NCBI GenBank assembly: GCA_002269645.1
Contig: NIVC01003295.1
Coordinates: forward strand, 42,027 to 106,026
From: Macrostomum lignano
Lineage: Eukaryota
Direction of reading: 5' to 3'
Length of the DNA: 64,000 bases
The notes beneath the pieces are model-generated. The model saw only the letters and a list, made by a program, of their open reading frames with translations. It was not told the origin of the DNA and did not search any database. The position numbers and the translations under genes are program-made. Numbering within the stretch: position 1 is the stretch's first letter; every line of letters begins with the position of its first letter. This document shows, piece by piece, positions 1 to 63,342 of this stretch.

Positions 1-660
1 GACCCGAACGAGCTGGCCAACTTCTACAACAACCCGATGGCGCCTCATCCGCACATGCCTCCGCATCACTACGGCCCCGGTGGTTACGGTCCGGCGCATC
101 ACCATCCACATCACATGCCGCCGCCACCACTGCCGCCGCAGCCGCAGCCTCCGATGTCTCATCCGCCACCACCTCATCATCATCCGCATGCTTACACGAC
201 TGGCCCGCCGCCACAGCACCACCAGCAGCAGGTGCCGCCACCGCCGCCTCTGCCGCCGCAGCAGCAGCAACAGCAGGGCGGCCGCAACAACCGCCTAAGC
301 GGTCGTGTTGGCGGCGGACTGGCTGGTTACAATCCTCCAATCGGGGCGCAGCAGCCGTCTGGTCAGATGCGCGGCGGCGGTCGCGGCGCCCGCAACAACG
401 GCGGAATGCGCTCGAGCACAGGCGGCAGCGCTAACGGTCAGCAGCAGCAACAGCAGCTGGCTCCTAACGCCGCAGGCGACGCCGGGCATATTAACAATAG
501 TGAGGGCATTAATAATGGTGGCGGAAATGCCGGCAAAGCCGGTGGTAGCAACGGTAATTGGCATCGAGGTGCTGCCCCGCGCGGCCAGCAGTATTATCAG
601 CAGCAGCAGCAGCAGCAAGCTCGCGGTGCCGGCGGCAGCTACACCCAGGCTACCGCTTAG
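1..660 (+). CDS. 3' terminal coding portion of a gene that begins before the window; Pro/His/Gln/Gly-rich low-complexity C-terminus
   Basis: Frame 1 is open from base 1 (DPNELANFYNNPMAPHPH...) to TAG at 658-660 with GC-rich coding-like composition. AATAAA at 700-705 and AT-rich UTR-like sequence follow. No folded domain is recognisable. Confidence 0.7.
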   Translation, partial: DPNELANFYNNPMAPHPHMPPHHYGPGGYGPAHHHPHHMPPPPLPPQPQPPMSHPPPPHHHPHAYTTGPPPQHHQQQVPPPPPLPPQQQQQQGGRNNRLSGRVGGGLAGYNPPIGAQQPSGQMRGGGRGARNNGGMRSSTGGSANGQQQQQQLAPNAAGDAGHINNSEGINNGGGNAGKAGGSNGNWHRGAAPRGQQYYQQQQQQQARGAGGSYTQATA

Positions 661-775
661 AATTATCGACACACAGGGGAAACCTATAATTTTTAGCCTA
701 ATAAATCTGTGCGCTATTCTCGTCAGCAGTAGACTAAATATTTAAGTTTGGACGAGACGAGAGACAAACCTTAGA

Positions 776-1095
776 GGGGGCACAGCTGCTAGTCTATATA
801 CACTAAAAACCTGTATGGTAGGCTGCTAGTGTATAATGAGGCCAGGTGACGTATCAGTTGATTGGTTCACTACCTATAGTAAAGAACGACCGCTTAGTGG
901 GGGCACAGGTGCTAGTCTTATATACTAAAAATGGCTTGTCTCTAAGTGGGTATGTTATCGTCTTCTATACACTAGAACTGTGCATGGTAGCTTTGTGAAT
1001 CCAGATCACGGATGATTTGATTGATTTACTATGTTTAAATTTAAAACTATATTCATTCTGAAGAACGACACCTTAAGGGGGGCACAGTTGCTAGT
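776..1095 (+). repeat. Three dispersed copies of GGGGGCACAGNTGCTAGT followed by CT(A/T)ATATAC(A)CTAAAAA-like sequence; Helitron-like 3' termini
   Basis: Copies at about 776-793, 899-916 and 1078-1095, each ending CTAG|T and preceded by a short imperfect palindrome (e.g. CCTTAAGG). Confidence 0.45.
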
Positions 1096-2532
1096 CTAAT
1101 ATACTAAAAAATACACAGGTTTTTTAGGCTAAAAATTCTCTAAAACTCTCAACGCAACTGCCGAAATGATATCAAGCGCGCCAAAATCTGACACATTTTT
1201 TTATTGTTTGTATTGATTGACGAATCTCGCGTTGTCGATATTTAGTTAGCGAATGAAGCCACAAGTGAAAGAGAAAGCAATTAGCAGAGAACATCACCAG
1301 TTGTACGCGTGTGTGTGATTGCTTGCTCACTCTGTAGTGAAATTCCAAGCGATCTGGCTATTTTTTGCCCATTTAAATGACTCTTGTGCCGCCGACTAAA
1401 GTGCGTCCACCCATCGCAATGTGGTCGCGACTTTTTTGCCCTTTATCCGGTAATAACAAGTTTTTTATATTATTTGCGTTAATTCTTTATTTAATTTCGT
1501 TTATACATTTATTTTTTGTCAAGCGCAGTTTTCCACCTTTTTTCCCTCTGGTCCGACTCTGTTGTATTCGCGTGGCTGATGCTTTTTTCCGGTCTGTCTT
1601 TTGTGTGCGTGTGGAATTTTTTTGTCGGCATTTAAGTCTTCTTGTTATCTATTTTTTGTTTGCTAGTTCGACTGTTGACTCTCCGCCGTAATAAAATTGC
1701 CCAAATTACTACTTTGCTAATTAATTTGCGTCAATAGTAACTTTATAATGTACTGTATTTGATTCTGATTAATAACGCATTAATTTCTATAAATGTAAAA
1801 CTCCTCGCGACTTGAATTTGTGTATAAAAATTGAACTTTTTCCTTATCAATACATCTATTAAACTGGCACTTGAATATAATTATCCACATGCTACTAATA
1901 GTAATATCATTATGGTGATTGGGTTATATTATAATTTACGAGTAGGCTTAACATTGTCTTCGTTTAATGGTTTTTTCTGCTCATTGCTGCTTATTGTAGT
2001 TTGTAACTTTTTCTTTATGAAAATTTCACTTCATCACTAATGCTGTTTTAAATAACCAGCTCGAAATTCGAGTAAAGAAATGTTTTCTTATTCTTTTTTT
2101 TCTTTTTAATTTTCAATTCTTTTTTTGATCGGTTTGACTTTCCGGCTCTTATTAATACTGCTTATAATTTTGTGCAAATGTTTGTACTGTATGCTCCTGT
2201 TCAGCCATATTTATTATTAATTATAATACTAATTATCAATAATTATGCTTCTGCTACCGAATTTTGTTAGAAAACTTTTTGTTGCAGTTCTAATGTTTTT
2301 TGTTCTAATTTTAATCATCAGGTTTCACTTGCAGTTTCACGCCGAGTTACTACTAATTACTACTAATAATAATCCTATGCGTCAGTTGTTCTCTCTTTTT
2401 TCAAGAAAAAGTAATCGGTTGCGTTTGTACTTTGTGTCACGCCGCTGTTTTGTTTAAAAATGACTCACTTGAGGGAATTTTCAGTCTTGGTTCTTTTGTT
2501 AATTGCTCTTCTTAATAAAGGTTGATAAAACC

Positions 2533-2965
2533 TCACCCTTGAAGGAAGTTCTTGTCCACGGAGTGACCTCACCGTTAAAGGAAGTTCTTGTCCACGGAGT
2601 GACCTCACCGTTAAGAAAGTTCTTGTCCACGGAGTGACCTGATCGTTAAAGGAAGTTCTTGTCCACGGAGTGACCTCACCGTTAAAGGAAGTTCTTGTCC
2701 ACTGAGTGACCTCACCGTTAAGAAAGTTCTTGTCCACGGAGTGACCTCACCGTTAAAAAAAGTTCTTGTCCACGGAGTGACCTCACTATTAAAGAAAGTT
2801 CTTGTCCACGGAGTGACCTCACCGTTAAAGGAAGTTCTTGTCCACGGAGTGACCTGATCGTTAAAGGAAGTTCTTGTTCACGGAGTGACCTCACTATTAA
2901 AGAAGGTTCTTGTCCACGGAGTGACCTCACCGTTTAAGAAAATTCTTGTCCATTGAGTGATCCGT
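2533..2965. repeat. Tandem minisatellite, ~36-bp unit (GAAGTTCTTGTCCACGGAGTGACCTCACCGTTAAAG)
   Basis: About 12 near-identical units visible directly. Confidence 0.95.
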
Positions 2966-3317
2966 CAGTTAAAGAAGTTTAATAACTACAAATGTATATC
3001 TATTTAAGATAGCCTAAGCTTAATCTGCATTAATCTGAAATGAAACTAGCATTATAGAAAATAAAACGCCAGATCGAGAAAACTTTTAACACAATACACG
3101 AATCTTAAATATTGTCCAAAGGAATGTTAAAGGACAAAGGAATGGTCGGACAGTTATAGATATCGTAAATCATATTTTAGGCCTGATAATTCGTGTCACA
3201 ATCTTGTTTAGACTAATTCAATTTATCGTGCTCACGAGAGTATAGTAAGGATCAATTAATGTAAGTTCGGCAGGATAAGGCAGTTTGATCAGTTTTATGC
3301 AGGCGGTTAGCGCAGAT

Positions 3318-4643
3318 TCATTTCTTTCCTAGAAGCGCAGTCTCCGCCGGCAGCAGTTTCCCGGAAAGGCGGCCCTCAGCGGCGGCCCGCAGCAGCCGCA
3401 GCGCCTGCCGAACGTCGTGGTGACTCACCTGAGCAGGCAGCCGTCGGATTCGAATGACTTCGTCGTCGCCTTCCTGACTGACCAGCAGCTGCAGTCTGTC
3501 GGCGAACCGGGCCTCCAGTCGGAAAGTCGCCGAGGTCAAGTCGAAGCTGCTCTGTCGCCGAACGAGGCCCAGCTGGATGAAGCGGATGGCGGCGGGGTCG
3601 TCCTCGCTGTTGAACAGCGCGCTGATCTGCCTCAGTGCGCCGTCAGCTGTCGCTGTCACGGCGGCTTCGATCACGGCGACTCTGAGAGGCCCGGCGAGAG
3701 ACTTCGGCAGCCCGAGCGAGCGGGTGAACACGGAGGCGAAGGCGGTTGCCATGGAGACTGGGATGCGGCGCAGAGTCTGGCTGGTAGCGGAAATGGCCAG
3801 GCGGTCGAATCCGGTTCTGACCAGCTCCACCAGCGTGGCGTTGCCGCCGTCCTCCGAGGTTGCAGCCGTTGGGCCTGCGGTCGTCGAAACCCCCAGCTGC
3901 AGTTCTTCCACCACCTCCGGTGCCTCGGGGGCATCGCTGGCGACCTCCTCGGCGGATCGGCGGCTGCGCAGCATGCCGGAGCTGGCGGCCACCCGACTTG
4001 CCGCGGCAGCGATGGCGAAGTGCCTCAGTCCAGCCTCCACCTGCCGCAGCTCCTCGGCCGTGAGGCCCCGCGGCACCTGCTGCGTCCAGGAGCGGCACCG
4101 TCTGATCAACCACCGGCGCTTGCAGCTTCGCATCGGCACAGGCGTTGTCTTGGCAACCAGCTGGGCGGTGGCGACGCTGTGCACGATGCCGAACTCCACG
4201 CTGACATCGTCGAGGCGCCGGCCAGCCCCGACGAAGGTCTCGTAGTGGCCGCGGCCGACCAGGGCGCTCACGGTGAAAGAGAACGTGTGGAAGGAGACGG
4301 AGCGAGCGAAGGCCAGGGCAGCCAGGCGGTTCGCCACCTCCTGAGGCAGTCCGCGAGACCTGATCGCCTGCTGCAACTCCTGCCGGGCCACCGAGCCCTG
4401 AACCAGCCGACTGCTGGCTTGCGGTGCCACCAGCAGACACGTCGGGCAGACCACTCCGCCAGGCAGGGGCGAAGCCAGCTGCCCCAGCTGACTGCGGAGC
4501 GCGCTGGATACTCCGGACTGAGCTGGGCGACTCAGCGCTCTGAAGGATGCGGGCTGAGGGCCGAAGCGCCTGGCAGACAGGGACTGAAGGCAGCAGCAGC
4601 TGCTCACGAGCGCAAGCAGCAGAAGATTTTCGCTGCAGAGCAT
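3318..4643 (-). CDS. Intronless secreted protein of unknown family (~441 aa): signal peptide, two related domains, furin-type RSRR site
   Basis: Long non-repetitive ORF. Likely start is ATG at 4643 (MLCSENLLLLALVSSCCCLQSLSA, a hydrophobic signal peptide). TATAAATA lies at 4735-4728 on the minus strand; stop at 3318. Confidence 0.8.
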   Translation of the reverse strand: MLCSENLLLLALVSSCCCLQSLSARRFGPQPASFRALSRPAQSGVSSALRSQLGQLASPLPGGVVCPTCLLVAPQASSRLVQGSVARQELQQAIRSRGLPQEVANRLAALAFARSVSFHTFSFTVSALVGRGHYETFVGAGRRLDDVSVEFGIVHSVATAQLVAKTTPVPMRSCKRRWLIRRCRSWTQQVPRGLTAEELRQVEAGLRHFAIAAAASRVAASSGMLRSRRSAEEVASDAPEAPEVVEELQLGVSTTAGPTAATSEDGGNATLVELVRTGFDRLAISATSQTLRRIPVSMATAFASVFTRSLGLPKSLAGPLRVAVIEAAVTATADGALRQISALFNSEDDPAAIRFIQLGLVRRQSSFDLTSATFRLEARFADRLQLLVSQEGDDEVIRIRRLPAQVSHHDVRQALRLLRAAAEGRLSGKLLPAETALLGKK

Positions 4644-4727
4644 TCTGTTACTTGACTGGACAGCAGATTTTTTCAGAGAATACTGAAAAAAATTTGTTAT
4701 TGCCATGGGCCTCCTGCAGGGCTGCCG

Positions 4728-4735
4728 TATTTATA
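4728..4735 (-). promoter_or_regulatory. Candidate TATA box of the secreted-protein gene
   Basis: TATAAATA on the minus strand about 85 nt upstream of ATG 4643. Confidence 0.5.
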
Positions 4736-5044
4736 GTATCAGAAATCACCTTGACATGGACCTCTGCGGGGGCCACCGCTTTCACATCTCTTTCCACTTT
4801 TTTCCTGCGAATGCTTCTATTTCTGTTTCCTGTGCTTGGCCTTCCGAATAAGGTGTTGCCGATTTCCGTGTGTGCCCGGAGTACCAAATGTGACTCAAAT
4901 GCACCTTGAGCACCTGGTCGGCTGCAGAGCTTTCCGACTGATAAGACTCTTGCAGCCCACGCACTGGAACAAGTGGTTATAACTATTTTTAATTAGAATT
5001 CCCTTGTAGGTTGCCTAGACTGGACTTTGCGTTTTCCGAAGCTT

Positions 5045-5190
5045 GAGAGGGAGAGGGAGACAGCAGAGAGGGAGATGAAGACAGCAGAGAGGGGGAGGGA
5101 GACAGCAGAGAGGGAAAGGGAGACAGCAGAGAGGGAGAGGGAGACAGCAGAGAGGAAGAGGGAGACAGCGGAGAGGGGGAGAGAGAGGGA
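5045..5190. repeat. Purine-rich 21-bp tandem repeat (GAGAGGGAGAGGGAGACAGCA)
   Basis: About 6-7 units visible. Confidence 0.9.
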
Positions 5191-5849
5191 ACCAACCATG
5201 CAGCTAAAAGAACGTAGGTTTTCCATAGTTAAAATTAATAACTCTCCACACATTTATGGGACTATCTTGATTTCCTCAGTCAGGCCCGTGAATGCAAGCA
5301 AGCAGAATTTTGGCACACTCATAGCCGAATTCCTGTAGAAAGTTTTTGAAGTTGATTACTACTCGTGTGTGCGTGTACTTTTAGCTTGCGTGCAGTTTTT
5401 CAAGCACATTTCATTTCCCCGAGTCCCGCGCGCGCGTGTCGTGACGAAAGCCTGTTAACTTTTGGACAGGATAAAAATCAGCCAATTTTGATGAGCAAAT
5501 AAATGGCTGACTTCCTGTTGAATAAAATAGGAAATTGTGCTGCTAACAACGAGTCGTGTCGTAGCGGTTCGAATGGCGGTGGAGCAGTGCGATGCTTGGT
5601 ATCAGAATCTCATTCAGTCACTGGGCCGTGATCAAGCATTACTGATTGGAGGGTGCCTGTGCATATAAATTGCTTGGCTACTTTTTTTGCTGCTACTAAA
5701 CCGCAAGAAACTTCAAGCAACTCTGCTTTCTGGTGAGTTGACTTTTGTTGGATTGTTCTCTGTCTTCGATTGCGGCCCTGTACTAAGGGTCTTACTCTCT
5801 AACTGTAAGAATGTTGTCATGCAAAACAACCTTTGACACGTTTCGAAGA

Positions 5850-6180
5850 ACAGTCTGACACAGATATGACCCTGGTCTGACACAGATATGACCCTGTTCT
5901 GACACAGAGATGACCCTGGTCTGACACAGTTATGACCCTGTTCTGACACAGAGATGACCCTGGTCTGACACAGTTATGACCCTGTTCTGACACAGAGATG
6001 ACCCTGGTCTGACACAAATGTGACCCTATTCTGACACAGATCTGACCCCATTCTGACACAGATCTGACCCCATTCTGACACAGATCTGACCCCATTCTGA
6101 CACAGATCTGACCCCATTCTGACACAGATATGACCAAATTCTGACACAGACATGACGCTATTCTGACTCTGTTCTGACAT
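5850..6180. repeat. 22-bp minisatellite (CTGACACAGATATGACCCTGGT) upstream of DNase I
   Basis: About 14 units, degenerate towards the 3' end. Confidence 0.9.
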
Positions 6181-6289
6181 AAAATAATCTGACGCAGCCG
6201 ATGACCCTAGTCTGACACTGACGCGCATGCAGATACTGACAGAGTTCCTCTCACTCGACCCCAACAGTCTCCAATCGTGTCGGTCTCAG

Positions 6290-8202
6290 ATGAAGCCCGC
6301 AACTCTGATCCTAGCGATCTTCGCGCTGTCAGCTGCCGTCAGTCTCGACTGCATTCCCGGAACAGCCACTGCTTCCAGGCATTCCAGTAGTAGGCGGCAG
6401 CCGATTCGTTTCGGATCGTTCAACATCCAGATATTCGGCCGGAAGAAAGCGCGCGACGCATTCGTGATGAACAATCTGGCTAGGATTCTGAATCGCTACG
6501 ATATTTTGGTTGTCATGGAGATTCGCGATAAGAGGTTTCTGTTATTCAGATACTAGTTACAATATTACCGGGGGCCCGGGTTAAGAAGGCATAAAACAAA
6601 ACAATTTTAGTTGAAGTCCAAATTTCGATGAAAAATGTGTGACGGATTCAATTTAGACTACTGAGAAAAGTAGAAGAACGAAGATTTGAATTTTTAATTT
6701 TCTCACGTAGCTTGAAAAATGTCGGGGTCGTGTGGCTGCTGAGCTGAGCTGCTCGTCCCGTTCTTTGAATTCTCGCATCTGAAGCAAGGTGGTCCTTGGC
6801 GGCTAAACTGGACTGGAGTCCCGTGTCTAGAGGCGTTGATTGCGACCAAAGTTACGCACGCTCGCACGTCAATTTCTTCTGCTTTTTTCAGCGGCGAAGC
6901 TTTTAGAAAGCTGGTTGAACGGGCGAATCGGGATGAGCGAAGAGACCCGTTCAGTTACGTCATCAGCGTCAGAACGGGCCGCACGGTGAGAGAAACTGCT
7001 TTCATGGATTGTCAGATTTTAGCTGGAGAGATTGAATAGTTATTATTCGAATATGCATCAGCTATAGCTACATGTACAAAGACTAGTAACAGATATAACT
7101 ACAAAGACTTGATCACAGACAGGTGGCTACAAAGTTTTGATCACAGAGAGGTGGCTATAAAGACTTGATCACAGACCAGTAGCTACAAAGACTTGATCAC
7201 AGACCAATAGCTACAAAGACTTGATCACAGACCAGTAGCTACAAAGACTTGATCACAGACCAGTAGCTACAAAGACTTGATCACAGACAGGCAGCTACAA
7301 AGACTTGATCACAGACTAGTAGCTACAAAGACTCGATCACAGACCAGTAGCTACAAAGACTCGATCACAGACCAGTAGCTACAAAGACTCGATCACAGAC
7401 CAGTAGCTACAAAGACTCGATCACAGACAGGCAGCTACAAAGACTTGATCACAGACCAGTAGCTACAAAGACTTGATCACAGGTATCTACAAAGACTCGA
7501 GATCACAGACAGGTAGCTACAGAGACAGACAGGCAGCTACAAAGACTTGATCACAGGTATCTACAAAGACTCGAGATCACAGACAGGTAGCTACAGAGAC
7601 AGACAGGTAGCTACAAAGACTTGCTATTATCAAATTAACGCCACCCTCAATCACGCCAGGTAAGCAAAGAGCAATACGCCGTTCTCTACCGAGAATCCGT
7701 GGCCGAAGTTCTGTCCGAACGGACAGTGGCCGATTCCGGCGACCGATTCCAGCGCGAACCGTACGAAGTTCGACTGGCGTTGAGACCGGCCGGTCGGTGC
7801 TCATCCTCGACCACCGTACTCACGGTGGTTTGTCTGCACACGGAGCCAGACGCCTCGGTGGAAGAGCTCAACGCCCTGCACGACATGCTGCGTCCCAGAC
7901 GTCGCGAGAACCTCCTGATTGCCGGCGACCTGAACGCCGATTGTCGCTACGTGAACCGCGGCGAGATGGCCGCCCTGCCGCTGCGGCTCGATCCCGACTT
8001 TCTCTGGCTGATCGGCGACGGCGTGGACACGACTGTGAAGTCGACGGACTGCGCCTACGACCGGCTGATCGTCACGCACTCGGCCTACCAGCTCATGCCT
8101 GGTGCCAGGGTGTTCCGCTTCGATACGGAGTTCGGGTTGAGCACAGATCAAGCTGCTCAAATTAGCGATCATTATCCTGTGGAGCTGGAGATTCTATTGT
8201 AG
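6290..8202 (+). CDS. DNASE1: Secreted deoxyribonuclease I family protein; exons 6290-6534, 6892-6985, 7660-8202
   Basis: Signal peptide MKPATLILAIFALSAAVS. DNase I motifs FNIQIFG, EIRD, SKEQY, FQREPY, LHTEP, GDLNADC, DTT, YDRLIV and SDHYPVE. GT-AG junctions join in frame (DK|SGE; GRT|VSKEQY). Confidence 0.95.
7110..7620. repeat. 28-bp minisatellite in DNase I intron 2 (AGCTACAAAGACTTGATCACAGACCAGT)
   Basis: About 17 units visible. Confidence 0.95.
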
Positions 8203-8254
8203 AGCATGCGCTAAGCAACTCTGTACTAATTGCTGGTGGCATTGCGTGTCGGTT

Positions 8255-9287
8255 AAGGGTGCCATTTTTAGCAATTGGGTGTCATTTTTAGTATCTGGGT
8301 GCCATTTTTAGCAATTGGGTGCCATTTTTAGTATCTAGGTGCCTTTTGAGTAACTGGGTGCCATTTTTAGTATCTGGGTGCCATTTTTAGCAATTTGAGG
8401 CCATTTTTAGTATCTGGGTGCCATTTTTAGCAATTGGGTGCCATTTTTAGTATCTAGGTGCCTTTTGAGTAACTGGGTGCCATTTTTAGTATCTGGGTGC
8501 CATTTTTAGCAATTGGAGGCCATTTTTAGTATCTGGGTGCCATTTTTAGCAATTGGGTGCCATTTTTAGTATCTAGGTGCCTTTTGAGTAACTGGGTGCC
8601 ATTTTTAGTATCTGGGTGCCATTTTTAGCAATTGGAGGCCATTTTTAGTAACTGGGTGCCATTTTTTAGCAATTGGGTGCCATTTTTAGTATCTAGGTGC
8701 CTTTTGAGTAACTGGGTGCCATTTTTAGTATCTGGGTGCCATTTTTAGCAATTGGAGGCCATTTTTAGTATCTGGGTGCCATTTTTAGCAATTGGGTGCC
8801 ATTTTTAGTATCTTGGTGCCTTTTGAGTAACTGGGTGCCATTTTTAGTATCTGGGTGCCATTTTTAGTATCTGAGTGTTTTTTTAGCAATTGGGTGTCAT
8901 TTTTAGCAACTGGGTGCCATTTTAGCAATTGGGTGTAACTTTTAGCAATTGGGTGCCATTTTTAGCAATTGGGTGCCATTTTTAGCAATTGGGTGCCATT
9001 TTTAGCAATTGGGTGCCGTTTTTAGCAATTGGGTGCCCTTTTTAGCAATTGGGTGCCATTTTTAGCAATTGGGTACCATTTTTAGCAATTGGGTGCCATT
9101 TTTAGCAATTGGGTGCCATTTTTAGCATCTATGGTAGTTGGGTGCCTTTTTTACTATTTGGGTGCCATTTTTAGCAATTGGGTGCCATTTTTAGCAATTG
9201 GGTGCCATTTTTAGCAATTGGGTGCCGTTTTTAGCAATTGGGTGCCATTTTTAGCAATTGGGTGCCATTTTTAGCAATTGGGTACCT
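8255..9287. repeat. 20-bp satellite (GGGTGCCATTTTTAGCAATT) with a ~119-bp higher-order cycle in the 5' half
   Basis: The variant GTATCT(A/T)GGTGCC recurs at about 8331, 8450, 8569, 8689 and 8808; units are homogeneous after about 8940. Confidence 0.95.
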
Positions 9288-9514
9288 TTACTTTGAGCTC
9301 ACAAAATAAACTTTTTTAATGCTCCAGAAGTCTGACTCAACTGTTCTATTATAATTAGTTTGAATTATTTGATCCTCAGCTTCCCGAACCAAATATAATA
9401 ATTCAATGGTTTTTGTTTTGGCAATGATTTGGTTTAATTTGCATCTTGACTTCGTTCATTCAGTGACGTGAGATAAACTATTGCACTTCTCTTCTGGTTT
9501 CCTGGTTTCCCTCT

Positions 9515-9955
9515 CGCTCCCTCCTCTCCGCTCCCTCCTCTCCGCTCCCTCCTCTCCGCTCCCTCCTCTCCGCTCCCTCCTCTCCGCTCCCTCCTCTCCG
9601 CTCCCTTCTCGATCCGCTCCCTCCTCTCCGCTCCCTCCTCTCCGCTCCCTTCTCGATCCGCTCCCTCCTCTCCGCTCCCTCACCCCGCTCCCTCCCCTCC
9701 GCTCCCTCCCCTCCGCTCCCTCCCCTCCGCTCCCTCCCCTCCGCTCCCTCCCCTCCGCTCCCTCCCCTCCGCTCCCTCCCCTCCGCTCCCTCCCCTCCGC
9801 TCCCTCCCCTCTGCTCCCTCCTCTCCGCTCCCTCCTATCCGCTCCCTCCTCTCCGCTCCCTCCCCTCCGCTCCCTCCCCTCCGCTCCCTCCTCTCCGCTC
9901 CCTCCCCTCCGCTCCCTCCCCTCCGCTCCCTCCTCTCCGCTCCCTCCTCTCCCCC
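9515..9955. repeat. 14-bp CT-rich tandem repeat (CTCCCTCCTCTCCG)
   Basis: About 30 units. Confidence 0.95.
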
Positions 9956-10266
9956 TCTCTCTCTCTGCCCCCTCTGTCTCCGTGTGTCCCAATTGTAACA
10001 ACCAGTAAATTCTGTCTTAACAAACAATTTTCAAAACAGATACCTACTTTAACATGTTGCTGTATATTTATAGGAGGTGCAACTTTGATTGAATTTGATT
10101 TTAGGACGAGAAACCACGTACATGTGTGAGTACGTACTATTGTTACTTATTCCTAAACAGACTTCATGCAAAATGACTCCAGTCTACACTTCATGTACGA
10201 CCGTGTAATATTTCAAGTAGTTGTTTTTGCATCGTAAATACTCGTAGATGTACTCGATTTAAAATT

Positions 10267-11399
10267 TTAATCGCGTCGGAACCAGCGTTTAGCTGTGATG
10301 CCATCCCAGATTATTGTCTGAAAATTTGAACAAAATACGCTGTCTTTAAAGGAACAAGGAAGGAAGGAAGGAAGGAAGGAAGAAAGGAAGGAAGGAAGGA
10401 AGGAAGGAAGGAAGGAAGGAAGGAAGGAAGGAAGGAAGGAAGGAAGGAAGGAAGGAAGGAAGGCAGGAAGGAAGGAAGGAAGGAAGGAAGGAAGGAAGGA
10501 AGGAAGGAAGGAAGGAAGGAAGGAAGGAAGGAAGGAAGGAAGGAAGGAAGGAAGGAAGGAAGGAAGGAAGGAAGGAAGGAAGGAAGGAAGGAAGGAAGGA
10601 AGGAAGGAAGGAAGGAAGGAAGGAAGGAAGGAAGGAAGGAAGGAAGGAAGGAAGGAAGGAAGGAAGGAAGGAAGGAAGGAAGGAAGGAAGGAAGGAAGGA
10701 AGGAAGGAAGGAAGGAAGGAAGGAAGGAAGGAAGGAAGGAAGGAAGGAAGGAAGGAGGGAAGGAGGGAGGAAGGCAAGCAGGAAGGAAGGAAGGAAGGAA
10801 GGAAGGAAGGAAGGAAGGAAGGAAGGAAGGAAGGAAGGAAGGAAGAAGGCAAGCAGGAAGGAATGAAGGAAGGAAGGAAGGAAGGAAAAAACTATGAAAG
10901 AGTAGAAGTCAGAAAAAGTATCAACCTCACTAACCAGTAACAGTTCGCCATTGTCCAGCAGTTCTCGGACCTGCTTCCGCCCTGACCGCTTCAGCTCCTC
11001 AGCTGAAGCCGCTTCGCCCATGTGGATCACCAGCTTGCCGTCCTCCCAGCAGGCGAGGCACTGCACCGGGCAGCAATGATGGCTTGCTTGCTTGTGTGTT
11101 TACCAACTGGAGTAAAATATTTCATGTCAACTCAAGTTTTTTGATAAAGTTCTCACATTCAACTCTGTCGATGTTCCACGGTTCCACCTGGCGATGCTAT
11201 CGATTGGCAGCCTCGTCTCCGTGTTGATCACCAGTGACTTCACCGAGAGCTGCACTTCCTCGCTGCCTCCGCTGCTGGCGTCCTCGATGCTCACCGAGAC
11301 ATTGAGCTTGGAGCCCAGCTTCTTGCCGATCCAGGACACGCCTTGGTGTGGGGCAGGGGTCTGTCTGTCTGTATGTATGTCTGTCTGTCTGTCTGTCTT

Positions 11400-11465
<66 letters not shown>

Positions 11466-11556
11466 CATGCAAGAACTCACCCATAGCGGTGAACACAGCC
11501 TCAAGATTTTCGTCTCGGTAAGAAGACCATTTGCCGAACAGTTCTGAGTTTGCCAT
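10267..11556 (-). CDS. FABP: Fatty-acid-binding protein / intracellular lipid-binding protein (~145 aa); exons 11556-11481, 11341-11157, 11060-10935, 10317-10267
   Basis: Spliced translation: MANSELFGKWSSYRDENLEAVFTAMG|VSWIGKKLGSKLNVSVSIE...TELN|CLACWEDGKLVIH...RELLDNGELLL|TIIWDGITAKRWFRRD*. It has the FxGKW motif and three introns (phases 1,0,0) at the canonical FABP positions. TATAAAA at 11656-11650. Confidence 0.9.
10357..10886. repeat. (GGAA)n microsatellite in FABP intron 3
   Basis: Direct observation. Confidence 0.98.
11359..11462. repeat. (CTGT)n microsatellite in FABP intron 1
   Basis: Direct observation. Confidence 0.95.
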
Positions 11557-11902
11557 GTCTGCAGTGGCACTGGCAGATCTTCAATCAAACGACTAAAAAG
11601 AAATGACGCAGTAAAACACAAATGCCCCTTCATTGATGCGCGAGTCGACTTTTATAAGTTTCTGTTCGTCCGGAATTCAGTTCAAAATTCTGAGCCGTCT
11701 GTGCGGAAACTGGAAAGCAGATCAGTGTCTGTCTGGAAGATTTCGGTCGTGAGAAAACTAAACAAAACTAGCAAGTGCCTTCTTGTGGTGTTGTAAAATG
11801 GACTGAAATATTATAAAACTTGAAACTGGAGACTTCTGCAACTGCGGAAAATTATTGACTAGCACGTGACAGAAGCTCTGCATTGTAACATACAACCTAT
11901 CC

Positions 11903-12170
<268 letters not shown>

Positions 12171-12234
12171 GGTGAGGACTAAGGTGAGAATGAGGCGGAA
12201 GAGTTAGATCAAAAAGCAGGCTAAGCAGAATCAT

Positions 12235-12403
12235 TACACTGAGCACAAACGGAACTCCCGAGCAGTGTTCCAATGCCCATCGAATCCCATGCAGGTTCTT
12301 ATAAGTCGGATTGTGGTAATGATCTTTAAAATTTGTCACCACCAAATCGCCGAACTCGTCGCTCTGCTTGTTAAAGTCGTCGATTTTCGTCCTGATCGGC
12401 GGA
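12235..12403 (-). pseudogene. Orphan exon of a beta-1,3-galactosyltransferase (GT31) family gene
   Basis: Translation QSDEFGDLVVTNFKDHYHNPTYKNLHGIRWALEHCSGVPFVLS matches the GT31 pattern E...GD....F.D.Y.NLT.K....W...C....FV. It is preceded by a CAG acceptor. The expected DDD motif and other exons were not found. Confidence 0.65.
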
Positions 12404-12410
12404 CTGCAAG

Positions 12411-15090
12411 GGGGTGCCAAAGCTACTGCAGGTGGCGCCAAAGCTACTGCAGGGGGCGCCAAAGCTACTGCAGGTGGTGCCAAAGCTACTGCAGGTGGCG
12501 CCAAAGCTACTGTAGGTGGCGCCAAAGCTACTGTAGGTGGCGCCAAAGCTACTGCAGGGGGCGCCAAAGCTACTGCAGGGGGCGCCAAAGCTACTGCAGG
12601 GGTGCCAAAGGCGCCAAATACTGCAGGGGGTGCCAAAGGCGCCAAATACTGCAGGGGGTGCCAAAGGCGCCAAATACTGCAGGGGGTGCCAAAGGCGTCA
12701 AATACTGCAGGGGGTGCCAAAGGCGCCAAATACTGCAGGGGGTGCCAAAGGCGCCAAATACTGCAGGGGGTGCCAAAGGCGCCAAATACTGCAGGGGGTG
12801 CCAAAGGCGCCAAATACTGCAGGGGGCGCCAAAGCTACTGCAGGGGGTGCCAAAGGCGCCAAATACTGCAGGGGGTGCCAAAGGCGCCAAATACTGCAGG
12901 GGGCGCCAAAGCTACTGCAGGGGGTGCCAAAGGCGCCAAATACTGCAGGGGGTGCCAAAGGCGCCAAATACTGCAGGGGGTGCCAAAGGCGCCAAATACT
13001 GCAGGGGGCGCCAAAGCTACTGCAGGGGTGCCAAAGGCGCCAAATACTGCAGGGGGTGCCAAAGGCGCCAAATACTGCAGGGGGTGCCAAAGGCGCCAAA
13101 TACTGCAGGGGTGCCAAAGGCGCCAAATACTGCAGCGGTGCCAATGCTACTGCAGGGGGTGCCAAAGCTACTGCAGGTGGTGCCAAAGCTACTGCAGGGG
13201 GTGCCAAAGCTACTGCAGGTGGCGCCAAAGCTACTGCAGGGGGTGCCAAAGCTACTGCAGGGGGTGCCAAAGCTACTGCAGGGGGCGCCAAAGCTACTGC
13301 AGGTGGTGCCAAAGCTACTGCAGGTGGCGCCAAAGCTACTGCAGGGGGCGCCAAAGCTACTGCAGGGGGTGCCAAAGCTACTGCAGGGGGTGCCAAAGCT
13401 ACTGCAGGGGGTGCAAAAGCTACTGCAGGGGGTGCCAAAGGCGCCAAATACTGCAGGGGGTGCCAAAGGCGCCAAATACTGCAGGGGGTGCCAAAGGCGC
13501 CAAATACTGCAGGGGGTGCCAAAGCTACTGCAGGGGGTGCCAAAGCTACTGCAGGTGGCGCCAAAGCTACTGCAGGGGGCGCCAAAGCTACTGCAGGTGG
13601 TGCCAAAGCTACTGCAGGGGGTGCCAAAGCTACTGCAGGTGGCGCCAAAGCTACTGCAGGGGGTGCCAAAGCTACTGCAGGGGGTGCCAAAGCTACTGCA
13701 GGGGGCGCCAAAGCTACTGCAGGTGGTGCCAAAGCTACTGCAGGTGGCGCCAAAGCTACTGCAAGGGGCGCCAAAGCTACTGCAGGGGGTGCCAAAGCTA
13801 CTGCAGGGGGTGCCAAAGCTACTGCAGGGGGTGCAAAAGCTACTGCAGGGGGTGCCAAAGGCGCCAAATACTGCAGGGGGTGCCAAAGGCGCCAAATACT
13901 GCAGGGGGTGCCAAAGGCGCCAAATACTGCAGGGGGTGCCAAAGCTACTGCAGGGGGTGCCAAAGCTACTGCAGGGGGCGCCAAAGCTACTGCAGGGGGC
14001 GCCAAAGCTACTGCAGGTGGTGCCAAAGCTACTGCAGGTGGCGCCAAAGCTACTGCAGGTGGCGCCAAAGCTACTGCAGGGGGTGCCAAAGCTACTGCAG
14101 GTGGCGCCAAAGCTACTGCAGGGGGTGCCAAAGCTACTGCAGGGGGTGCCAAAGCTACTGCAGGGGGCGCCAAAGCTACTGCAGGTGGTGCCAAAGCTAC
14201 TGCAGGTGGCGCCAAAGCTACTGCAGGGGGCGCCAAAGCTACTGCAGGGGGTGCCAAAGCTACTGCAGGGGGTGCCAAAGCTACTGCAGGGGGTGCAAAA
14301 GCTACTGCAGGGGGTGCCAAAGGCGCCAAATACTGCAGGGGGTGCCAAAGGCGCCAAATACTGCAGGGGGTGCCAAAGGCGCCAAATACTGCAGGGGGTG
14401 CCAAAGCTACTGCAGGGGGTGCCAAAGCTACTGCAGGTGGCGCCAAAGCTACTGCAGGGGCGCCAAAGCTACTGCAGGTGGTGCCAAAGCTACTGCAGGT
14501 GGCGCCAAAGCTACTGCAGGTGGCGCCAAAGCTACTGCAGGGGGTGCCAAAGCTACTGCAGGGGGTGCCAAAGCTACTGCAGGGGGCGCCAAAGCTACTG
14601 CAGGTGGTGCCAAAGCTACTGCAGGTGGCGCCAAAGCTACTGCAGGGGGCGCCAAAGCTACTGCAGGGGGTGCCAAAGCTACTGCAGGGGGTGCCAAAGC
14701 TACTGCAGGGGGTGCAAAAGCTACTGCAGGGGGTGCCAAAGCTACTGCAGGGGGTGCCAAAGCTACTGCAGGGGGTGCAAAAGCTACTGCAGGGGGCGCC
14801 AAAGCTACTGCAGGTGGCGCCAAAGCTACTGCAGGGGGCGCCAAAGCTACTGCAGGGGGCGCCAAAGCTACTTCAGGGGGCGCCAAAGCTACTGCAGGGG
14901 GCGCCAAAGCTACTGCAGGGGGCGCCAAAGCTACTGCAGGGGGCGCCAAAGCTACTGCAGGGGGCGCCAAAGCTACTGCAGGGGGCGCCAAAGCTACTGC
15001 AGGTGGCGCCAAAGCTACTGCAGGGGGCGCCAAAGCTACTGCAGGGGGCGCCAAAGCTACTGCAGGGGCGCCAAAGCTACTGCAGGTGGT
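12411..15090. repeat. GC-rich satellite, 21-bp unit (GGTGCCAAAGCTACTGCAGGG) mixed with a ~29-bp variant (...GGCGCCAAATACTGCAG)
   Basis: More than 100 units over 2.7 kb; accounts for the 870-948 aa ORFs. Confidence 0.98.
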
Positions 15091-15189
15091 GCATATGCTT
15101 TTGCCAACTGATTAGGGGTGGGTTAGGGTTAAGCCTAACAGAAGGCTGACTGTGGGTCGACAGGCGCACTGATTTGCAAAGGGCTCCAC

Positions 15190-15444
15190 TTGCATGCTGC
15201 CCCAATTCAGAAGCAGGTCGCGAGCTGGGGCGTGCAGCAGGAGCGGCGCCGCAGTGACGCCAGCCAGTTCCCCTCAGTGCGGCCCTGGGCTGGCATCCAC
15301 TCGGCCGGCCAGAGCGAGGCCGTCTTCCCGGACAGTGCTGGTCGCCGAGGCCAAGCAGTGGCTTTCGAACTCGCGAATGTCCAAGACTGGACGGCCCGGT
15401 GGCCCGACCTAAACCCGATTGAGAACGCTTGGGCGCTGCTATAG
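15190..15444 (+). mobile_element. Degenerate Tc1/mariner-like (IS630-Tc1) DDE transposase fragment
   Basis: DWTARWPDLNPIENAWALL resembles the Tc1 motif DWPxxSPDLNPIENxW. In-frame stop at 15442-15444; flanked on both sides by satellites. Confidence 0.75.
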
Positions 15445-15484
15445 GCGAGGAAGGCGTGGAGGCGAGGCTGGTGGGGAGCATGCC

Positions 15485-18116
15485 TGGGATCTGGGATCAG
15501 CATGGGATTTGGGGTCAGCATGGGATCTGGGGTCAGCATGGGATCTGGGATCAGCATGGGATCTGGGGTCAGCATGGGATCTGGGGTCAGCATGGGATCT
15601 GGGGTCAGCATGGGATCTGAGATCAGCATGGGATCTGAGATCAGCATGGGATCTGGGATCAGCATGGGATCTGGGGTCAGCATGGGATCTGGGGTCAGCA
15701 TGGGATCTGGGGTCAGCATGGGATCTGGGGTCAGCATGGGATCTGGGGTCAGCATGGGATCTGAGATCAGCATGGGATCTGGGGTCAGCATGGGATCTGG
15801 GGTCAGCATGGGATCTGGGGTCAGCATGGGATCTGGGGTCAGCATGGGATCTGAGATCAGCATGGGATCTGGGATCAGCATGGGATCTGGGATCAGCATG
15901 GGATCTGGGGTCAGCATGGGATCTGGGGTCAGCATGGGATCTGAGATCAGCATGGGATCTGGGATCAGCATGGGATCTGGGGTCAGCATGGGATCTGAGA
16001 TCAGCATGGGATCTGGGATCAGCATGGGATCTGGGACCAGCATGGGATCTGGAACCAGCATGGGATCTGGAACCAGCATGGGATCTGGAACCAGCATGGG
16101 ATCTGGAACCAGCATGGGATCTGGGATCAGCATGGGATCTGGGATCAGCATGGGATCTGAAATCAGCATGGGATCTGGGATCAGCATGGGATCTGGGACC
16201 AGCATGGGATCTGGAACCAGCATGGGATCTGGGATCAGCATGGGATCTGAGATCAGCATGGGATCTGGGATCAGCATGGGATCTGGGATCAGCATGGGAT
16301 CTGGGGTCAGCATGGGATCTGGGGTCAGCATGGGATCTGGGGTCAGCATGGGATCTGAGATCTGAGATCAGCATGGGATCTGGAACCAGCATGGGATCTG
16401 GAACCAGCATGGGATCTGGAACCAGCATGTGATCTGGAACCAGCATGGGATCTGGAACCAGCATGGGATCTGGAACCAGCATGGGATCTGAGATCAGCAT
16501 GGGATCTGGGATCAGCATGGGATCTGGGATCAGCATGGGATCTGGGGTCAGCATGGGATCTGGGGTCAGCATGGGATCTGAGATCAGCATGGGATCTGGG
16601 ATCAGCATGGGATCTGGGACCAGCATGGGATCTGGAACCAGCATGGGATCTGGAACCAGCATGGGATCTGGAACCAGCATGGGATCTGGAACCAGCATGG
16701 GATCTGGGATCAGCATGGGATCTGGGATCAGCATGGGATCTGGGATCAGCATGGGATCTGGGATCAGCATGGGATCTGAGATCAGCATGGGATCTGAGAT
16801 CAGCATGGGATCTGAGATCAGCATGGGATCTGGGATCAGCATGGGATCTGGGGTCAGCATGGGATCTGGGATCAGCATGGGATCTGAAATCAGCATGGGA
16901 TCTGAGATCAGCATGGGATCTGGGACCAGCATGGGATCTGGAACCAGCATGGGATCTGGAACCAGCATGGGATCTGGGATCAGCATGGGATCTGAGATCA
17001 GCATGGGATCTGGGATCAGCATGGGATCTGGGATCAGCATGGGATCTGGGGTCAGTATGGGATCTGGGGTCAGCATGGGATCTGGGGTCAGCATGGGATC
17101 TGAGATCTGAGATCAGCATGGGATCTGGAACCAGCATGGGATCTGGAACCAGCATGGGATCTGGAACCAGCATGGGATCTGGAACCAGCATGGGATCTGG
17201 AACCAGCATGGGATCTGGAACCAGCATGGGATCTGGAACCAGCATGGGATCTGAGATCAGCATGGGATCTGGGATCAGCATGGGATCTGGGATCAGCATG
17301 GGATCTGGGGTCAGCATGGGATCTGGGGTCAGCATGGGATCTGGGGTCAGCATGGGATCTGAGATCAGCATGGGATCTGGGATCAGCATGGGATCTGAGA
17401 TCAGCATGGGATCTGAGATCAGCATGGGATCTGAGATCAGCATGGGATCTGGGATCAGCATGGGATCTGGGATCAGCATGGGATCTGGGATCAGCATGGG
17501 ATCTGAGATCAGCATGGGATCTGAGATCAGCATGGGATCTGCGACCAGCATGGGATCTGGAACCAGCATGGGATCTGGAACCAGCATGGGATCTGGGATC
17601 AGCATGGGATCTGAGATCAGCATGGGATCTGGAACCAGCATGGGATCTGGAACCAGCATGGGATCTGGAACCAGCATGGGATCTGGAACCAGCATGGGAT
17701 CTGGAACCAGCATGGGATCTGGAACCAGCATGGGATCTGAGATCAGCATGGGATCTGGGATCAGCATGGGATCTGGGATCAGCATGGGATCTGGGGTCAG
17801 CATGGGATCTGGGGTCAGCATGGGATCTGGGGTCAGCATGGGATCTGAGATCAGCATGGGATCTGGGATCAGCATGGGATCTGGGACCAGCATGGGATCT
17901 GGAACCAGCATGGGATCTGGAACCAGCATGGGATCTGGAACCAGCATGGGATCTGGAACCAGCATGGGATCTGGAACCAGCATGGGATCTGGAACCAGCA
18001 TGGGATCTGGAACCAGCATGGGATCTGGGATCAGCATGGGATCTGAGATCAGCATGGGATCTGAGATCAGCATGTGATCTGGGATCAGCATGGGATCTGG
18101 GATCAGCATGGGATCC
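15485..18116. repeat. 18-bp satellite (TCAGCATGGGATCTGGGG and variants), 2.6 kb
   Basis: About 145 units with variant blocks; GAGATCTGAGATC junctions at about 16357 and 17102. Confidence 0.98.
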
Positions 18117-18420
18117 CGTAGAAAATGAGAAATCTGGGTGAGCGTGTTGATTTTTCAAAGCTTATAGATTTTAACCCAGTTATTTAGTTTTCATTATAAT
18201 ATTGTAATAATTGCTAATTCAGTATTATTATTACTAGTTATAATTTAACCCTCTCAATGTTAGTCAGCAGTTCAACTTGTTAAGTCGCTGTTTACTTTTA
18301 TCATATTTATTTTCTTATAGCACATTTTTAACAGAACAAAAATATAATTCGAAATACGCTACTAAATTAGTCAAATTGAGTAGTACAATGCGAAATCATC
18401 AATTATTAATAGAAGCTTGA

Positions 18421-24384: not shown

Positions 24385-27300
24385 TTCTAGCCGAAGTAAC
24401 TTGCCGGCTGTGGATGACACAGCGCCTCCGCGACCATCCGCAACCATCGGGGACGCCACGGCGAGACCCGTGGAGCAAAATCTGAGCGCAGTGCCTCCGA
24501 GAAGAGACCTGCCACTCCAGCTGCCCAGCAGCTGAGCACGACCTCTGGAGCTGCCCGTCGTCGGCTTAACAAGGCGAGGCGGGCCAAAGGAGGGCGGAAG
24601 CCTAACCGGAGCCAGGGGCCAACAGCCCGCAGCAGTGAAAGCTTCCCAATCGGGGGCGGCGGCGGAAGAGGGCCCTGAGCCCACTGAAGTCCCTGCCCAG
24701 GATAGGGAAGCTGATGCAGGCGGGAGGGTGGACAGCCAACCCACCTGATGAAGACTCCACCGAACCCCGGGCCTCCTACGCTGAGTCGGCAGAGGCAACT
24801 GGTGGTTGTCATCCTGGGGAAGGACGTATGCCTGTCTCCCGACCAGCTGAAGCAGGTGAGCCGCACTGTTGATGGCCTCTTGTGGAAGCTCACTCTGAAG
24901 GGCACGCCTCTGAACATTCACTCGAATGCGACGAGGGACTCGTGCCGTCTTATTTGCCCCAGTGATGCTGACTCGGGTCGGCGGCTCCTTGAGCTGCTGC
25001 CCGAGCAAAGCTGGGACCTCAACCTAGCCTTCTGCAGAGAGGACGAGTGCCCCCAGACCAAGAGGCTTCGAATCTGGGTTCCGGCCAAGAGCGTCGTTAC
25101 CTCTTCTGACGAGCTCCGGAAAGGACTGCTAGCAGTCAACCGAGAGCTCTCTACCGTGGGTCTAGTGGTAAATGACACCCTAACCTAAAGCGCACCGACG
25201 GCACCGGCTTCACATCCATCCTGGGGCTGTCGGACGCCTGGATGAGGCGCTATCCGCACGGCAGCTTCATCAACTTGCATGTACGCATCCGCTTTTACGA
25301 GGCCGACGGCGGTAAGCAGGGCGGGCGGGACGTGGAGGCGGCCGGGTCCGAGGCGGGAGCTTCTGCCCAGGCTGCCAAAGCGAGCGCCCCGCCCGGCAGA
25401 ACGGCACTGCTGAGGGCGAAGGCGACCGACTGAAGCTGAAGCGCAACTGAAGCGGTCCGCACCGCCAAAATCAGCAAGCTGAGGCGAGAGGTCGCCGAGA
25501 CGCCCAGGGCAGGGCCGACTTGAGACGGACCCGCCTGCCCAGGTGGCTGGCTGCTCCAAGGCCCCCGTAGCTGATGGGCGAAGGGCGGCGAACGCTGCCT
25601 ATTGCCTTCCTACCGATCGGGGGCCTTTTGCTGAAGAGCCCATGGACACCGGTGACCCCGACCCGAAGCTGGTGAGCGCCGAGGTGCAGTGATGCCAGCG
25701 TCAACCTGGTGTCTGCAGATCAACATCCAGCACTGCGTGACGCGTCAACCTGATGCGTGCGACAGCTCTCGGGCCTAGTCTTCGTGCAGGAGCCCTGGTT
25801 GACTAAAGGTAAGCCAAATAACGTACCATCTGGCTAATCACTGCTTTTGCATGGCGGACTCCCAGCCTCGCCCAAGATCTCTGATCTTTGCTGCAAATGC
25901 TTTTAAGGCATGTATGAGACCTGATCTCTCGACCGGGGACATCTGTGTTGTTCAAATCAATAACCTCCTTCCCAATAAACCTGTGCTGGCAGCATCCGCT
26001 TACTTCCCGGGCGATGCTCAAGTGGTCTGCGACGCGATAGACAACCTCATTGACTACACCGCGTCCCGCCAGTTCGGGCCCGGGTGGTCTTTATCCCCAA
26101 GCCTGGGAAGAGCGACTTCCAATCGGTGAAGGCCTTCAGGCCTATCAGCCTCACTTCCTTCTGCCTTAAGCTACTCGAAAGTTTGGTGCTTTGGCGCCTG
26201 CTCTCGGTCGAGCTGAAGCGCTTCCCACTCTCAGAACCAGCACGCCTTCCGCGCGGGCAGGTCTACTGAGAGTGGACTTGCATGGACCTTCAGTGGACCT
26301 TCATGTCATCGTCGACTTCCTGGAGAGGGCCGTTCTTGGCAACGGCTTTGCCCTCTCGCTTTTCCTGAACATTGAGGGGGCTTTCGCCAACGTCATCTTC
26401 GAGGCCTTTTGCAGAGCCCTGGAATCCAGGGCCACCCACCTTCACCTTGTCCTGTGGATCATGTTCATGATCCAGAACCGCACTGTCGTGGCCCACCTGA
26501 ACGGCAGCTCTCTTACGGCGCCTGTTCAGAAAGGGGGCCCCAGGGCGGAGTTCTCACCCCCCTTCTCTAGAACATGGGCATGGATGAGTTGCTATGCAGT
26601 GATCTCCATGACCCTATTCTCAAGGCGGGCTATGCCGATGATGTGACCGCAATAAGCGCGGACCCCTCAGTCGACACCATCAAGAGATCTCCTGCAGGGC
26701 TTTCTGGGACGAGCGGAGCGTTGGGCAAACCAATGTGGCCTCAGGCTCTCAGAGTAGAAAACCACAGCGGTCATGTCTACCAACAAACTGCTCTGGACCA
26801 TTAAGCCGCTCACCCTCTATGGAAAGGACATTTCTATGGAGAAGCAGGTCGGCTGCCTGGGCCTCACTCTGGACCACAGGCTTAACTGGACTCCGCAACT
26901 TCAAACTAAAGCTAAAAAAGCTCTTACTGTCCTGGCTCAGGTCAGACACGCCGTGGGCACCACCTGGAGGCTCACCCCAGGAAGCTGGGGTGGATTTACA
27001 CTGCCATTCTTACGCCCCTCGATCAGTTACGACAGCCTCGTGCGGGCCAGCCGTCTGAGCGTCATAAGCAGCCTCGACGCTCTCTACAAAATCCAGGCAG
27101 AGCCTGCCGCATGACTATGGGCGCTCCACCCTCTACTCCTTTTGAAGGCATGAATGCCTTCCTCTGTGCCCCTCCGGGTATTTATATCAAAGGAGAGGCG
27201 GCGAAGAGCACCCGGCGTCTTCTAGATGCTGGGGTGGCCTTCAAGAAAGTGCGGGTCTTTAAGAAGCGGTCGCTTATCCCGCACTCCGATCTTTGCCTTA

Positions 27301-31006: not shown

Positions 31007-43693
<12,687 letters not shown>

Positions 43694-63267: not shown

Positions 63268-63342
63268 GTGAGTTCGAGTTTTATATGCAGCTGCTGGGTA
63301 TTTACTGTGTGCTCGATTGCTTCAGTTTACGCTTTGAGTCAT

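Follow-up and report, generated by a model that had tools for sequence, protein, structure and literature searches.

The 64,000-nucleotide stretch of the Macrostomum lignano genome analyzed here (the window; contig NIVC01003295.1, positions 42,027 to 106,026 of the forward strand) carries on its minus strand, at 3318..4643, the gene Mlig031296, whose product is a true member of a family of proteins built from two modules, domains A and B, that has otherwise been seen among protists and, judged by its fold, among giant viruses. We consider it slightly better than an even chance that Mlig031296 is an expressed single-exon gene for a secreted protein of five parts (signal peptide, domain A, RSRR site, linker and domain B), that this protein acts through a cationic domain A released by cleavage, as proposed below, and that the gene arose by retroposition or intron loss among native paralogues.

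A complete single-exon gene under selection

The coding sequence (CDS) is one complete exon that encodes 441 amino acids (aa), opening with the ATG at 4643 and closing with the TGA stop codon (3318-3320), and its best protein matches are the M. lignano models BOX15_Mlig031296g1 (98% identity) and then g2. Every motif quoted in the original prediction for this locus, which had been made from the DNA letters alone, was found in the translation: CPTC at aa 66-69, RSRGLPQEVANRL from aa 95, CKRRWLIRRC at aa 174-183, VPRGLTAEELRQVEAGL from aa 190, MLRSRRS from aa 224, RSLGLPKSLAGPL from aa 308 and PAQVSHHDVRQALRLL from aa 403. The TATA box that it named, TATAAATA, is present at 4728..4735 on the minus strand, 85 nt 5′ of the ATG. 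Another in-frame ATG (4704..4706, minus strand) is probably outside the mRNA. Since just 22 nt separate it from the TATA box and the transcript-derived public models begin downstream of it, ~45-55 nt after the TATA box, the ATG at 4643 is the likely translation start. An in-frame stop is present still further upstream, and polyA-signal-like hexamers are listed downstream of the CDS.

Mlig031296 is a real gene. A second genomic copy (NIVC01001045) shares 97% DNA identity with the window across positions 1-5186, and between the two copies the CDS differs by 16 synonymous and 8 non-synonymous changes plus the indel of one in-frame codon, the only difference in CDS length. The ratio of non-synonymous to synonymous substitution rates (dN/dS) is 0.18 (binomial P against neutrality = 7e-5). 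Identity reaches 98.0% in the CDS, 93.4% in the 5′ flank and 95.3% in the 3′ flank, the flanks having many indels. The uninterrupted frame together with this dN/dS bears out the claim of an intronless gene, and the spliced structure claimed for its neighbors can be seen in the homeologous locus by comparing gene ranges with product lengths. The GenBank annotation of the M. lignano assembly was built from an RNA-seq-guided transcriptome (PMC5730564); since models g1 and g2 exist in it, transcripts of Mlig031296 are implied. With a mean of 4.9 introns per gene in this species (PMC5730564), an intronless gene is atypical.

A family of A and B domains without a Pfam entry

When 1.84 billion cluster representatives were scanned exhaustively with HMMER, the Mlig031296 protein matched 37 proteins (cut-off E ≤ 1e-3), most of them aligned to aa ~40-220, which corresponds to domain A; one of them, P0005, aligned over aa 32-388 (E = 1e-24). 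Neither the protein nor the family profile had a match in Pfam or in sequence searches of the PDB. The original prediction was therefore right that no named family could be assigned, and the A/B-domain family is absent from Pfam, from solved structures and from the literature. The suggestion of a lone novel protein did not hold, since domain A occurs in at least five groups of M. lignano paralogues (Mlig031296; Mlig022805; Mlig006903; Mlig018188/026559/019930; Mlig017382/010958) and ~30 protist-like relatives exist besides. In a word-indexed database of named sequences, even a profile search matched only M. lignano and two unnamed proteins, and P0005 used as query returned itself alone.

Domain A of Mlig031296 (3978..4538, minus strand, aa 36-222) is the conserved module of the family and scores 167 bits against the domain A profile over profile positions 4-178. 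Domain B (3351..3818, minus strand, aa 276-431) is the second module, which is ~185 aa long and is repeated once or twice in long relatives. The match to its profile covers aa 261-379 (47.7-50.3 bits, profile positions 2-109 of 184); the remainder of domain B aligns in MAFFT and is folded in the AlphaFold2 (AF2) model, with no score on its own. A MAFFT alignment of 26 family sequences is collinear across domain A, the variable linker and domain B. Mlig031296 matches both domains collinearly and has the invariant Cys loop and RG...E. It differs from other members in having only one B domain, in which the hairpin loop is shortened, in being far more cationic than most protist members, and in an RxRR site that it shares only with its closest paralogues.

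Among the architectures of the family are A by itself, A+B, A+B+B, A+lectin and WSC+A. The Pfam domains found in relatives are accessory only: two WSC domains in one M. lignano paralogue, B_lectin in several proteins and DUF5648 in one. Mlig006903 corresponds to UniProt A0A1I8GB95, "WSC domain-containing protein", and the other paralogues are labelled as hypothetical or by their accessory domain. Domain-A paralogues also occur as head-to-tail tandem pairs with shared intron positions, namely the WSC-WSC-A gene Mlig006903 with Mlig017382 and Mlig018188 with Mlig019930 (L008 8001-11321 and L009 8001-14022). No further family copies were found within the window, and no tandem array in the protist contig.

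The remaining ~30 relatives are protist-like and come from metagenome or transcriptome assemblies in ENA, Logan or JGI. Examples include a eukaryotic contig of 27% GC with a family gene that carries a ~70-nt AT-rich intron, metagenome contigs of ~2 kb and one mRNA-like contig. In the 27%-GC contig (L002), the gene caller split an A+B+B homologue at this GT...AG intron (11590-11665), so that the models P0039 and P0023 each cover only part of a longer protein.

The hallmark hairpin and the predicted fold

C174, R192, G193 and E198 never vary across the 26 aligned sequences, at least 90% of which also have C183. These residues fall in CKRRWLIRRC (4095..4124, minus strand), the Cys-bracketed tip of a predicted basic and aromatic β-hairpin, and in PRGLTAEE (4050..4073, minus strand, aa 191-198), which caps the long C-terminal helix of domain A. 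The Cys-bracketed basic loop and the "VPRGLT..E" that the original prediction singled out thus coincide with the invariant core of the family. In the AF2 model C174 and C183 oppose each other across the hairpin (strands 165-177 and 180-192), with W178-L179 at its tip. A β-hairpin stapled by a modelled disulfide is the hallmark of the family, and in Mlig031296 it is strongly basic with a Trp-Leu tip. The CPTC pair (4437..4448, minus strand) is common to the flatworm clade, more widely spaced in some relatives and absent from many protist members.

A single-sequence AlphaFold run gave a useless model (predicted local distance difference test, pLDDT, of 36). AF2 run with the family alignment reached a mean pLDDT of 79, with domain A above 90, domain B at 70-90 and aa 228-274 below 50. 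The predicted fold is a curved antiparallel sheet of five to six long strands, packed with two paired helices and the long helix at the C-terminus. Foldseek against predicted viral structures gave significant matches (E 3e-6 to 1.6e-3, probability 1.00; template modelling (TM) scores 0.33-0.49 normalized to the viral protein), the only significant fold matches to the model. They are uncharacterized proteins of ~190-270 aa from Mimiviridae-like giant viruses: Borely moumouvirus A0A6G6ADX5, Edafosvirus A0A3G4ZYQ2, Hyperionvirus A0A3G5A862 and Terrestrivirus A0A3G4ZN21. Although the model reaches a TM score of ~0.49 over the viral protein, sequence identity to the Mlig031296 protein is only 9-12%, and a pattern scan of viral contigs with a narrow alignment found no sequence relatives.

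Origin of the intronless gene

Introns are present in the paralogues Mlig006903, Mlig017382, Mlig018188 and Mlig019930, with two shared positions, and absent from both Mlig031296 and Mlig022805. The last exon of the intron-bearing paralogues always encodes ~100 aa and splits domain A, and the penultimate exon of the A-only paralogues (Mlig017382, Mlig018188 and Mlig019930) encodes ~87 aa. Mlig031296 lacks the introns of its paralogues, one of the features by which a retrogene is recognized, and is a clean case of an intronless derivative among intron-bearing paralogues. GC content at third codon positions is 0.80 in Mlig031296, 0.64-0.74 in coding open reading frames (ORFs) of the window and 0.715 in a paralogue, which places the gene at the upper end of native values and near the paralogue. 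In a neighbor-joining tree, the flatworm paralogues, P0004 and P0005 form one clade with deep internal branches (bootstrap 0.87).

The most likely origin of the intronless state is retroposition or intron loss within a native family of intron-bearing paralogues, which is favored over recent horizontal transfer because the paralogue introns are conserved and the codon GC is native. Of the two origins raised by the original prediction, retroposition is thus plausible. A recent horizontal transfer was rejected in view of the native codon GC, the spliceosomal introns of the paralogues, and the monophyly and depth of the flatworm clade. A retroposition event would predate the split between A+B and A-only members, so that its marks at the insertion, a poly(A) remnant and target-site duplications, have probably decayed.

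Horizontal transfer at an ancient date, from a protist or a giant virus to the Macrostomum lineage with subsequent diversification, is unlikely in our view, though it deserves to be weighed seriously. It would account for M. lignano being the sole carrier among named sequences while the other matches are protist-like contigs, for the giant-virus proteins being the only significant fold matches (E 3e-6 to 1e-4) and for the flatworm copies falling in one clade. Against it stand the same native codon composition, conserved spliceosomal introns and deep branches within the flatworm clade; moreover, the lack of matches in other animals may stem from the sensitivity of the searches and from the way databases name their entries, and the sister sequence P0005 is not traceable to a source. 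Retroposition or intron loss among native paralogues remains our preferred explanation.

Secretion, processing and possible function

The N-terminus, MLCSENLLLLALVSSCCCLQSLSA (4572..4643, minus strand, aa 1-24), resembles a signal peptide, as originally claimed, with a hydropathy maximum of 2.58; it is modelled as a helix followed by a disordered stretch, and 29 of 36 family members have an equivalent hydrophobic segment. The fusion partners of the family (B_lectin, WSC and DUF5648) are extracellular glycan binders, and fusion to lectin and WSC domains speaks for a role outside the cell in which surfaces are targeted. RSRR (3957..3968, minus strand, aa 226-229) is a candidate proprotein-convertase site that lies where the ordered domain A gives way to the disordered linker and pLDDT drops from 96 to below 50, and is accessible in a putative secretory protein, as a furin-type R-x-[KR]-R substrate should be. 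The acidic Ser/Thr/Ala-rich linker noted by the original prediction follows directly (3819..3956, minus strand, aa 230-275; net charge -10) and is predicted to be disordered. The two nearest paralogues keep an RxRR with an acidic tail in the same place, RSRR|QAETAVESE / RSRR|QAETAVESEKFDLDFQDD in Mlig022805 (P0040) and RIRR|SVVEDEA / RIRR|SVVEDEALPETVDLLE in P0004, and the weight that we give to RSRR comes from this positional conservation and not from the motif alone. The proposed cleavage site is therefore well placed and conserved among close paralogues, but the RxRR motif taken by itself does not exceed chance.

Domain A with its flanks has a net charge of ~+20 (isoelectric point, pI, 11.9), to which the hairpin (aa 165-192) contributes +9, and domain B has a net charge of +8. 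Domain A is similarly basic in flatworm members and P0005 (+13 to +31) and in a few protist members (+17 to +18), with most others at -8 to +11. The counterpart of the stapled hairpin in domain B (3441-3497, aa 383-401) has an acidic tip, SQEGDDE, and no cysteines. It is pure speculation that these opposite hairpin charges hint at intramolecular masking.

In the mechanism that we propose, the protein would enter the secretory pathway and be cut by a furin-type convertase after R229 of RSRR, so that domain A, which is highly cationic (pI ~12), would be parted from domain B and the acidic linker. The freed domain might then settle on anionic surfaces, such as microbial or prey membranes or glycans, by means of its stapled, basic and aromatic-tipped hairpin, and serve as a defense- or effector-type secretion. 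Two known systems offer partial analogies. Defense proteins of the BPI/LBP type are secreted and lipid-binding, with two tandem homologous α+β domains of which the N-terminal one is cationic. Mlig031296 may resemble them in its putative secretion, its apparently related tandem α+β domains and its cationic N-terminal domain; its size and linker are not alike, and neither an LBP_BPI_CETP domain (Pfam) nor a TULIP fold (Foldseek against the PDB) was found. Disulfide-bracketed cationic β-hairpins also occur in anti-lipopolysaccharide factors and in β-hairpin antimicrobial peptides. The C-KRR-WL-IRR-C of Mlig031296 would be comparably stapled, amphipathic and basic with an aromatic tip, but it sits in a domain of 190 aa and shares no sequence or family kinship with them. 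Pfam detected no pore-former, toxin or lectin signature in the protein, including MACPF and aerolysin domains, and the toxin, defense or adhesive role suggested by the original prediction is hypothetical.

Several observations weigh against this mechanism and the structural picture behind it. Removal of a signal peptide and the convertase cut are both putative. RxRR has no counterpart in distant relatives and is unremarkable where Arg makes up 10.7% of the residues; two such motifs occur in the protein (shuffle P for at least two = 0.13), and the second, RIRR at aa 398-401, is inside a β-strand of domain B. Many protist A domains are acidic, and cationic membrane binding is therefore not a family-wide mechanism. 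Foldseek of the AF2 model against the PDB gave nothing significant (best E = 0.06) and so no structural anchor for function, and literature and supplement searches with the identifiers of Mlig031296 and its paralogues found no expression site or phenotype. For domain B, the profile match is limited to aa 261-379 and the C-terminal third is supported by the model only (pLDDT 70-80), and the structural likeness of the two domains, described below, is one of element order and motif positions and not of superposition.

Two other functions seem rather improbable to us, and about equally so. The first is a carrier of hydrophobic ligands (lipids or sterols) in an extracellular secretion, in which each domain would form a helix-grip-like cup with the ligand held between the sheet and the C-terminal helix. 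The modelled order of β-α-α-β meander-long C-terminal helix fits that of Bet v 1, START and PYR/PYL proteins (SRPBCC), and the weak Foldseek list against the PDB is composed mostly of Bet v 1, PYL, START, CoxG and StARkin helix-grip proteins. However, these matches are insignificant (E 0.13-0.8, probability ≤ 0.16, TM ≤ 0.28), neither Pfam, Foldseek against the PDB nor the comparison of the profile with PDB sequences places the protein among SRPBCC members, and it differs from them in an extra N-terminal helix, the modelled disulfide-stapled hairpin and putative secretion. The extreme positive charge and the lectin fusions would also be atypical.

The second is a structural or adhesive component of mucus, rhabdites, eggshell or seminal fluid, whose basic domains would cross-link acidic glycans or proteins instead of attacking membranes. 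A putatively secreted, very basic protein with an acidic Ser/Thr-rich linker that could be glycosylated would suit this role, as would the fusion of paralogues and relatives to glycan-binding WSC, B_lectin and DUF5648 domains, and secreted gland proteins specific to its lineage are numerous in M. lignano (PMC5977470). Yet the domains are compact and globular rather than low-complexity repeats, and the family is present in many unicellular eukaryotes which have no such organs.

A bolder extension of the cationic-effector mechanism is just as doubtful as these two. In it, A/B would be a new extracellular fold family with a patchy distribution in protists, giant viruses and one flatworm lineage, with the stapled hairpin as a warhead that engages membranes or glycans; in the flatworm, it would have become a furin-activated, two-subunit cationic defense effector in which the hairpin of domain A is masked by the linker or by the QEGDDE tip of domain B until cleavage. 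The product of Mlig031296 is a well-delimited protein with a hypothetical function, and no new mechanism is demonstrated. If our proposal holds, Mlig031296 would add an uncatalogued secreted fold family with a recognizable hallmark (stapled hairpin and RG...E), modular lectin fusions and an unusual spread over protists, giant viruses and a flatworm. Since M. lignano is genetically tractable, Mlig031296 would then be a testable candidate for innate defense or gland secretion.

Relationship between domains A and B

The original prediction regarded domain B as an echo of domain A. At the pairwise level this is not upheld, as the half-versus-half Smith-Waterman score within the protein is at chance (35 versus 33.6 ± 5.4 after shuffling). 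At the profile level it is: hhalign joins the A and B profiles over 123 collinear columns with a score of 37.5 (probability 76%, P = 2e-5), ~11 standard deviations above 100 column-shuffled controls (11.7 ± 2.2, maximum 19.3) and well above a reversed profile (16). The paired columns unite the two "LP" helices, EY.GAAR with CKYV.I, the Cys hairpin with the SKS..GG loop and VPRG.T..E with VP......L, and they include both echo pairs first proposed. Several B domains also carry the A-type PRG/PRS/PRN-x-T-x-x-D/E motif (IPRGVTSEDI, VPRSVTQADV and VPRNLTSKDL). In the AF2 model both halves have ten elements in the same order (H-E-H-H-E-E-E-E-E-H), with LP before the second helix of the pair and with P-R-G (A) and P-A-Q (B) both after the last strand.

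We conclude from profiles and model that A and B are ancient duplicates of one α+β fold. The duplication is a feature of the whole family, in which both modules are found, and not a recent internal repeat. That the two halves are unrelated and their motifs alike by chance or convergence is very unlikely: the pairwise score at chance level and an hhalign probability of only 76% would be consistent with it, but such a profile score over shuffled controls, the PRG.T..E motif in several B domains and the identical order of ten elements argue against it.

Gene models and other features of the window

An antisense ORF of 412 aa overlaps the Mlig031296 locus. The public model BOX15_Mlig031296g2 (P0002) is identical to the protein encoded in the window up to ~aa 240 and then continues in another frame (…SDAPRHRRWWKNCSW…). 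A homopolymer lies at 3927-3931 (G5 on the plus strand, C5 in the gene), and a C-run shorter by one base would yield the frame shift of g2, which reflects either an indel introduced in assembly or a frameshifted allele captured by the older assembly. The open antisense frame and the frameshifted g2 might suggest that the ORF is spurious and due to GC-rich DNA, or that it is a dead retrocopy, but a dN/dS of 0.18, homologues across eukaryotes, a confident fold prediction, the TATA box in place and transcript-derived public models make this scarcely credible.

UniProt A0A1I8FGL0 (P0003; window ~3318-12813, minus strand) carries a "MACPF" label that we rejected, as it is a chimeric gene model in which Pfam finds only a Galactosyl_T fragment. 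It joins a galactosyltransferase fragment (~12.6 kb) with pieces at ~11.2-11.4 and ~10.9-11.0 kb, with the antisense of a DNase I-like exon (~7.8-8.2 kb) and with aa 51-155 of Mlig031296. The exon in question belongs to an ORF at 7699-8202 on the plus strand, ending in ...SDHYPVELEILL, which has a weak Exo_endo_phos match and appears to be the terminal exon of a gene for a secreted DNase I-like protein, the divergent upstream neighbor of Mlig031296.

A large share of the window consists of long tandem mini- and microsatellite arrays (~8250-9400, 9450-10030, 10310-11070, 12260-15150, 15200-18160, 33900-34900, 35370-35820, 39270-39870, 42985-43585, 51200-52050 and 63200-63960), which are open in several frames on both strands at once and probably confuse gene prediction in the window. 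Retroelement remnants are present at 26191-27864 (plus strand), where a reverse transcriptase-like ORF lies upstream of an RNase H domain (27436-27864, Pfam E = 2e-7). A phospholipase D gene exon with the HKD active-site motif is found at 62617-63250 on the plus strand (PLDc, E = 5e-8). The end of another plus-strand ORF, at ~34750-34907, has the potassium-channel selectivity-filter signature TVGYGD and is probably a K+ channel exon.

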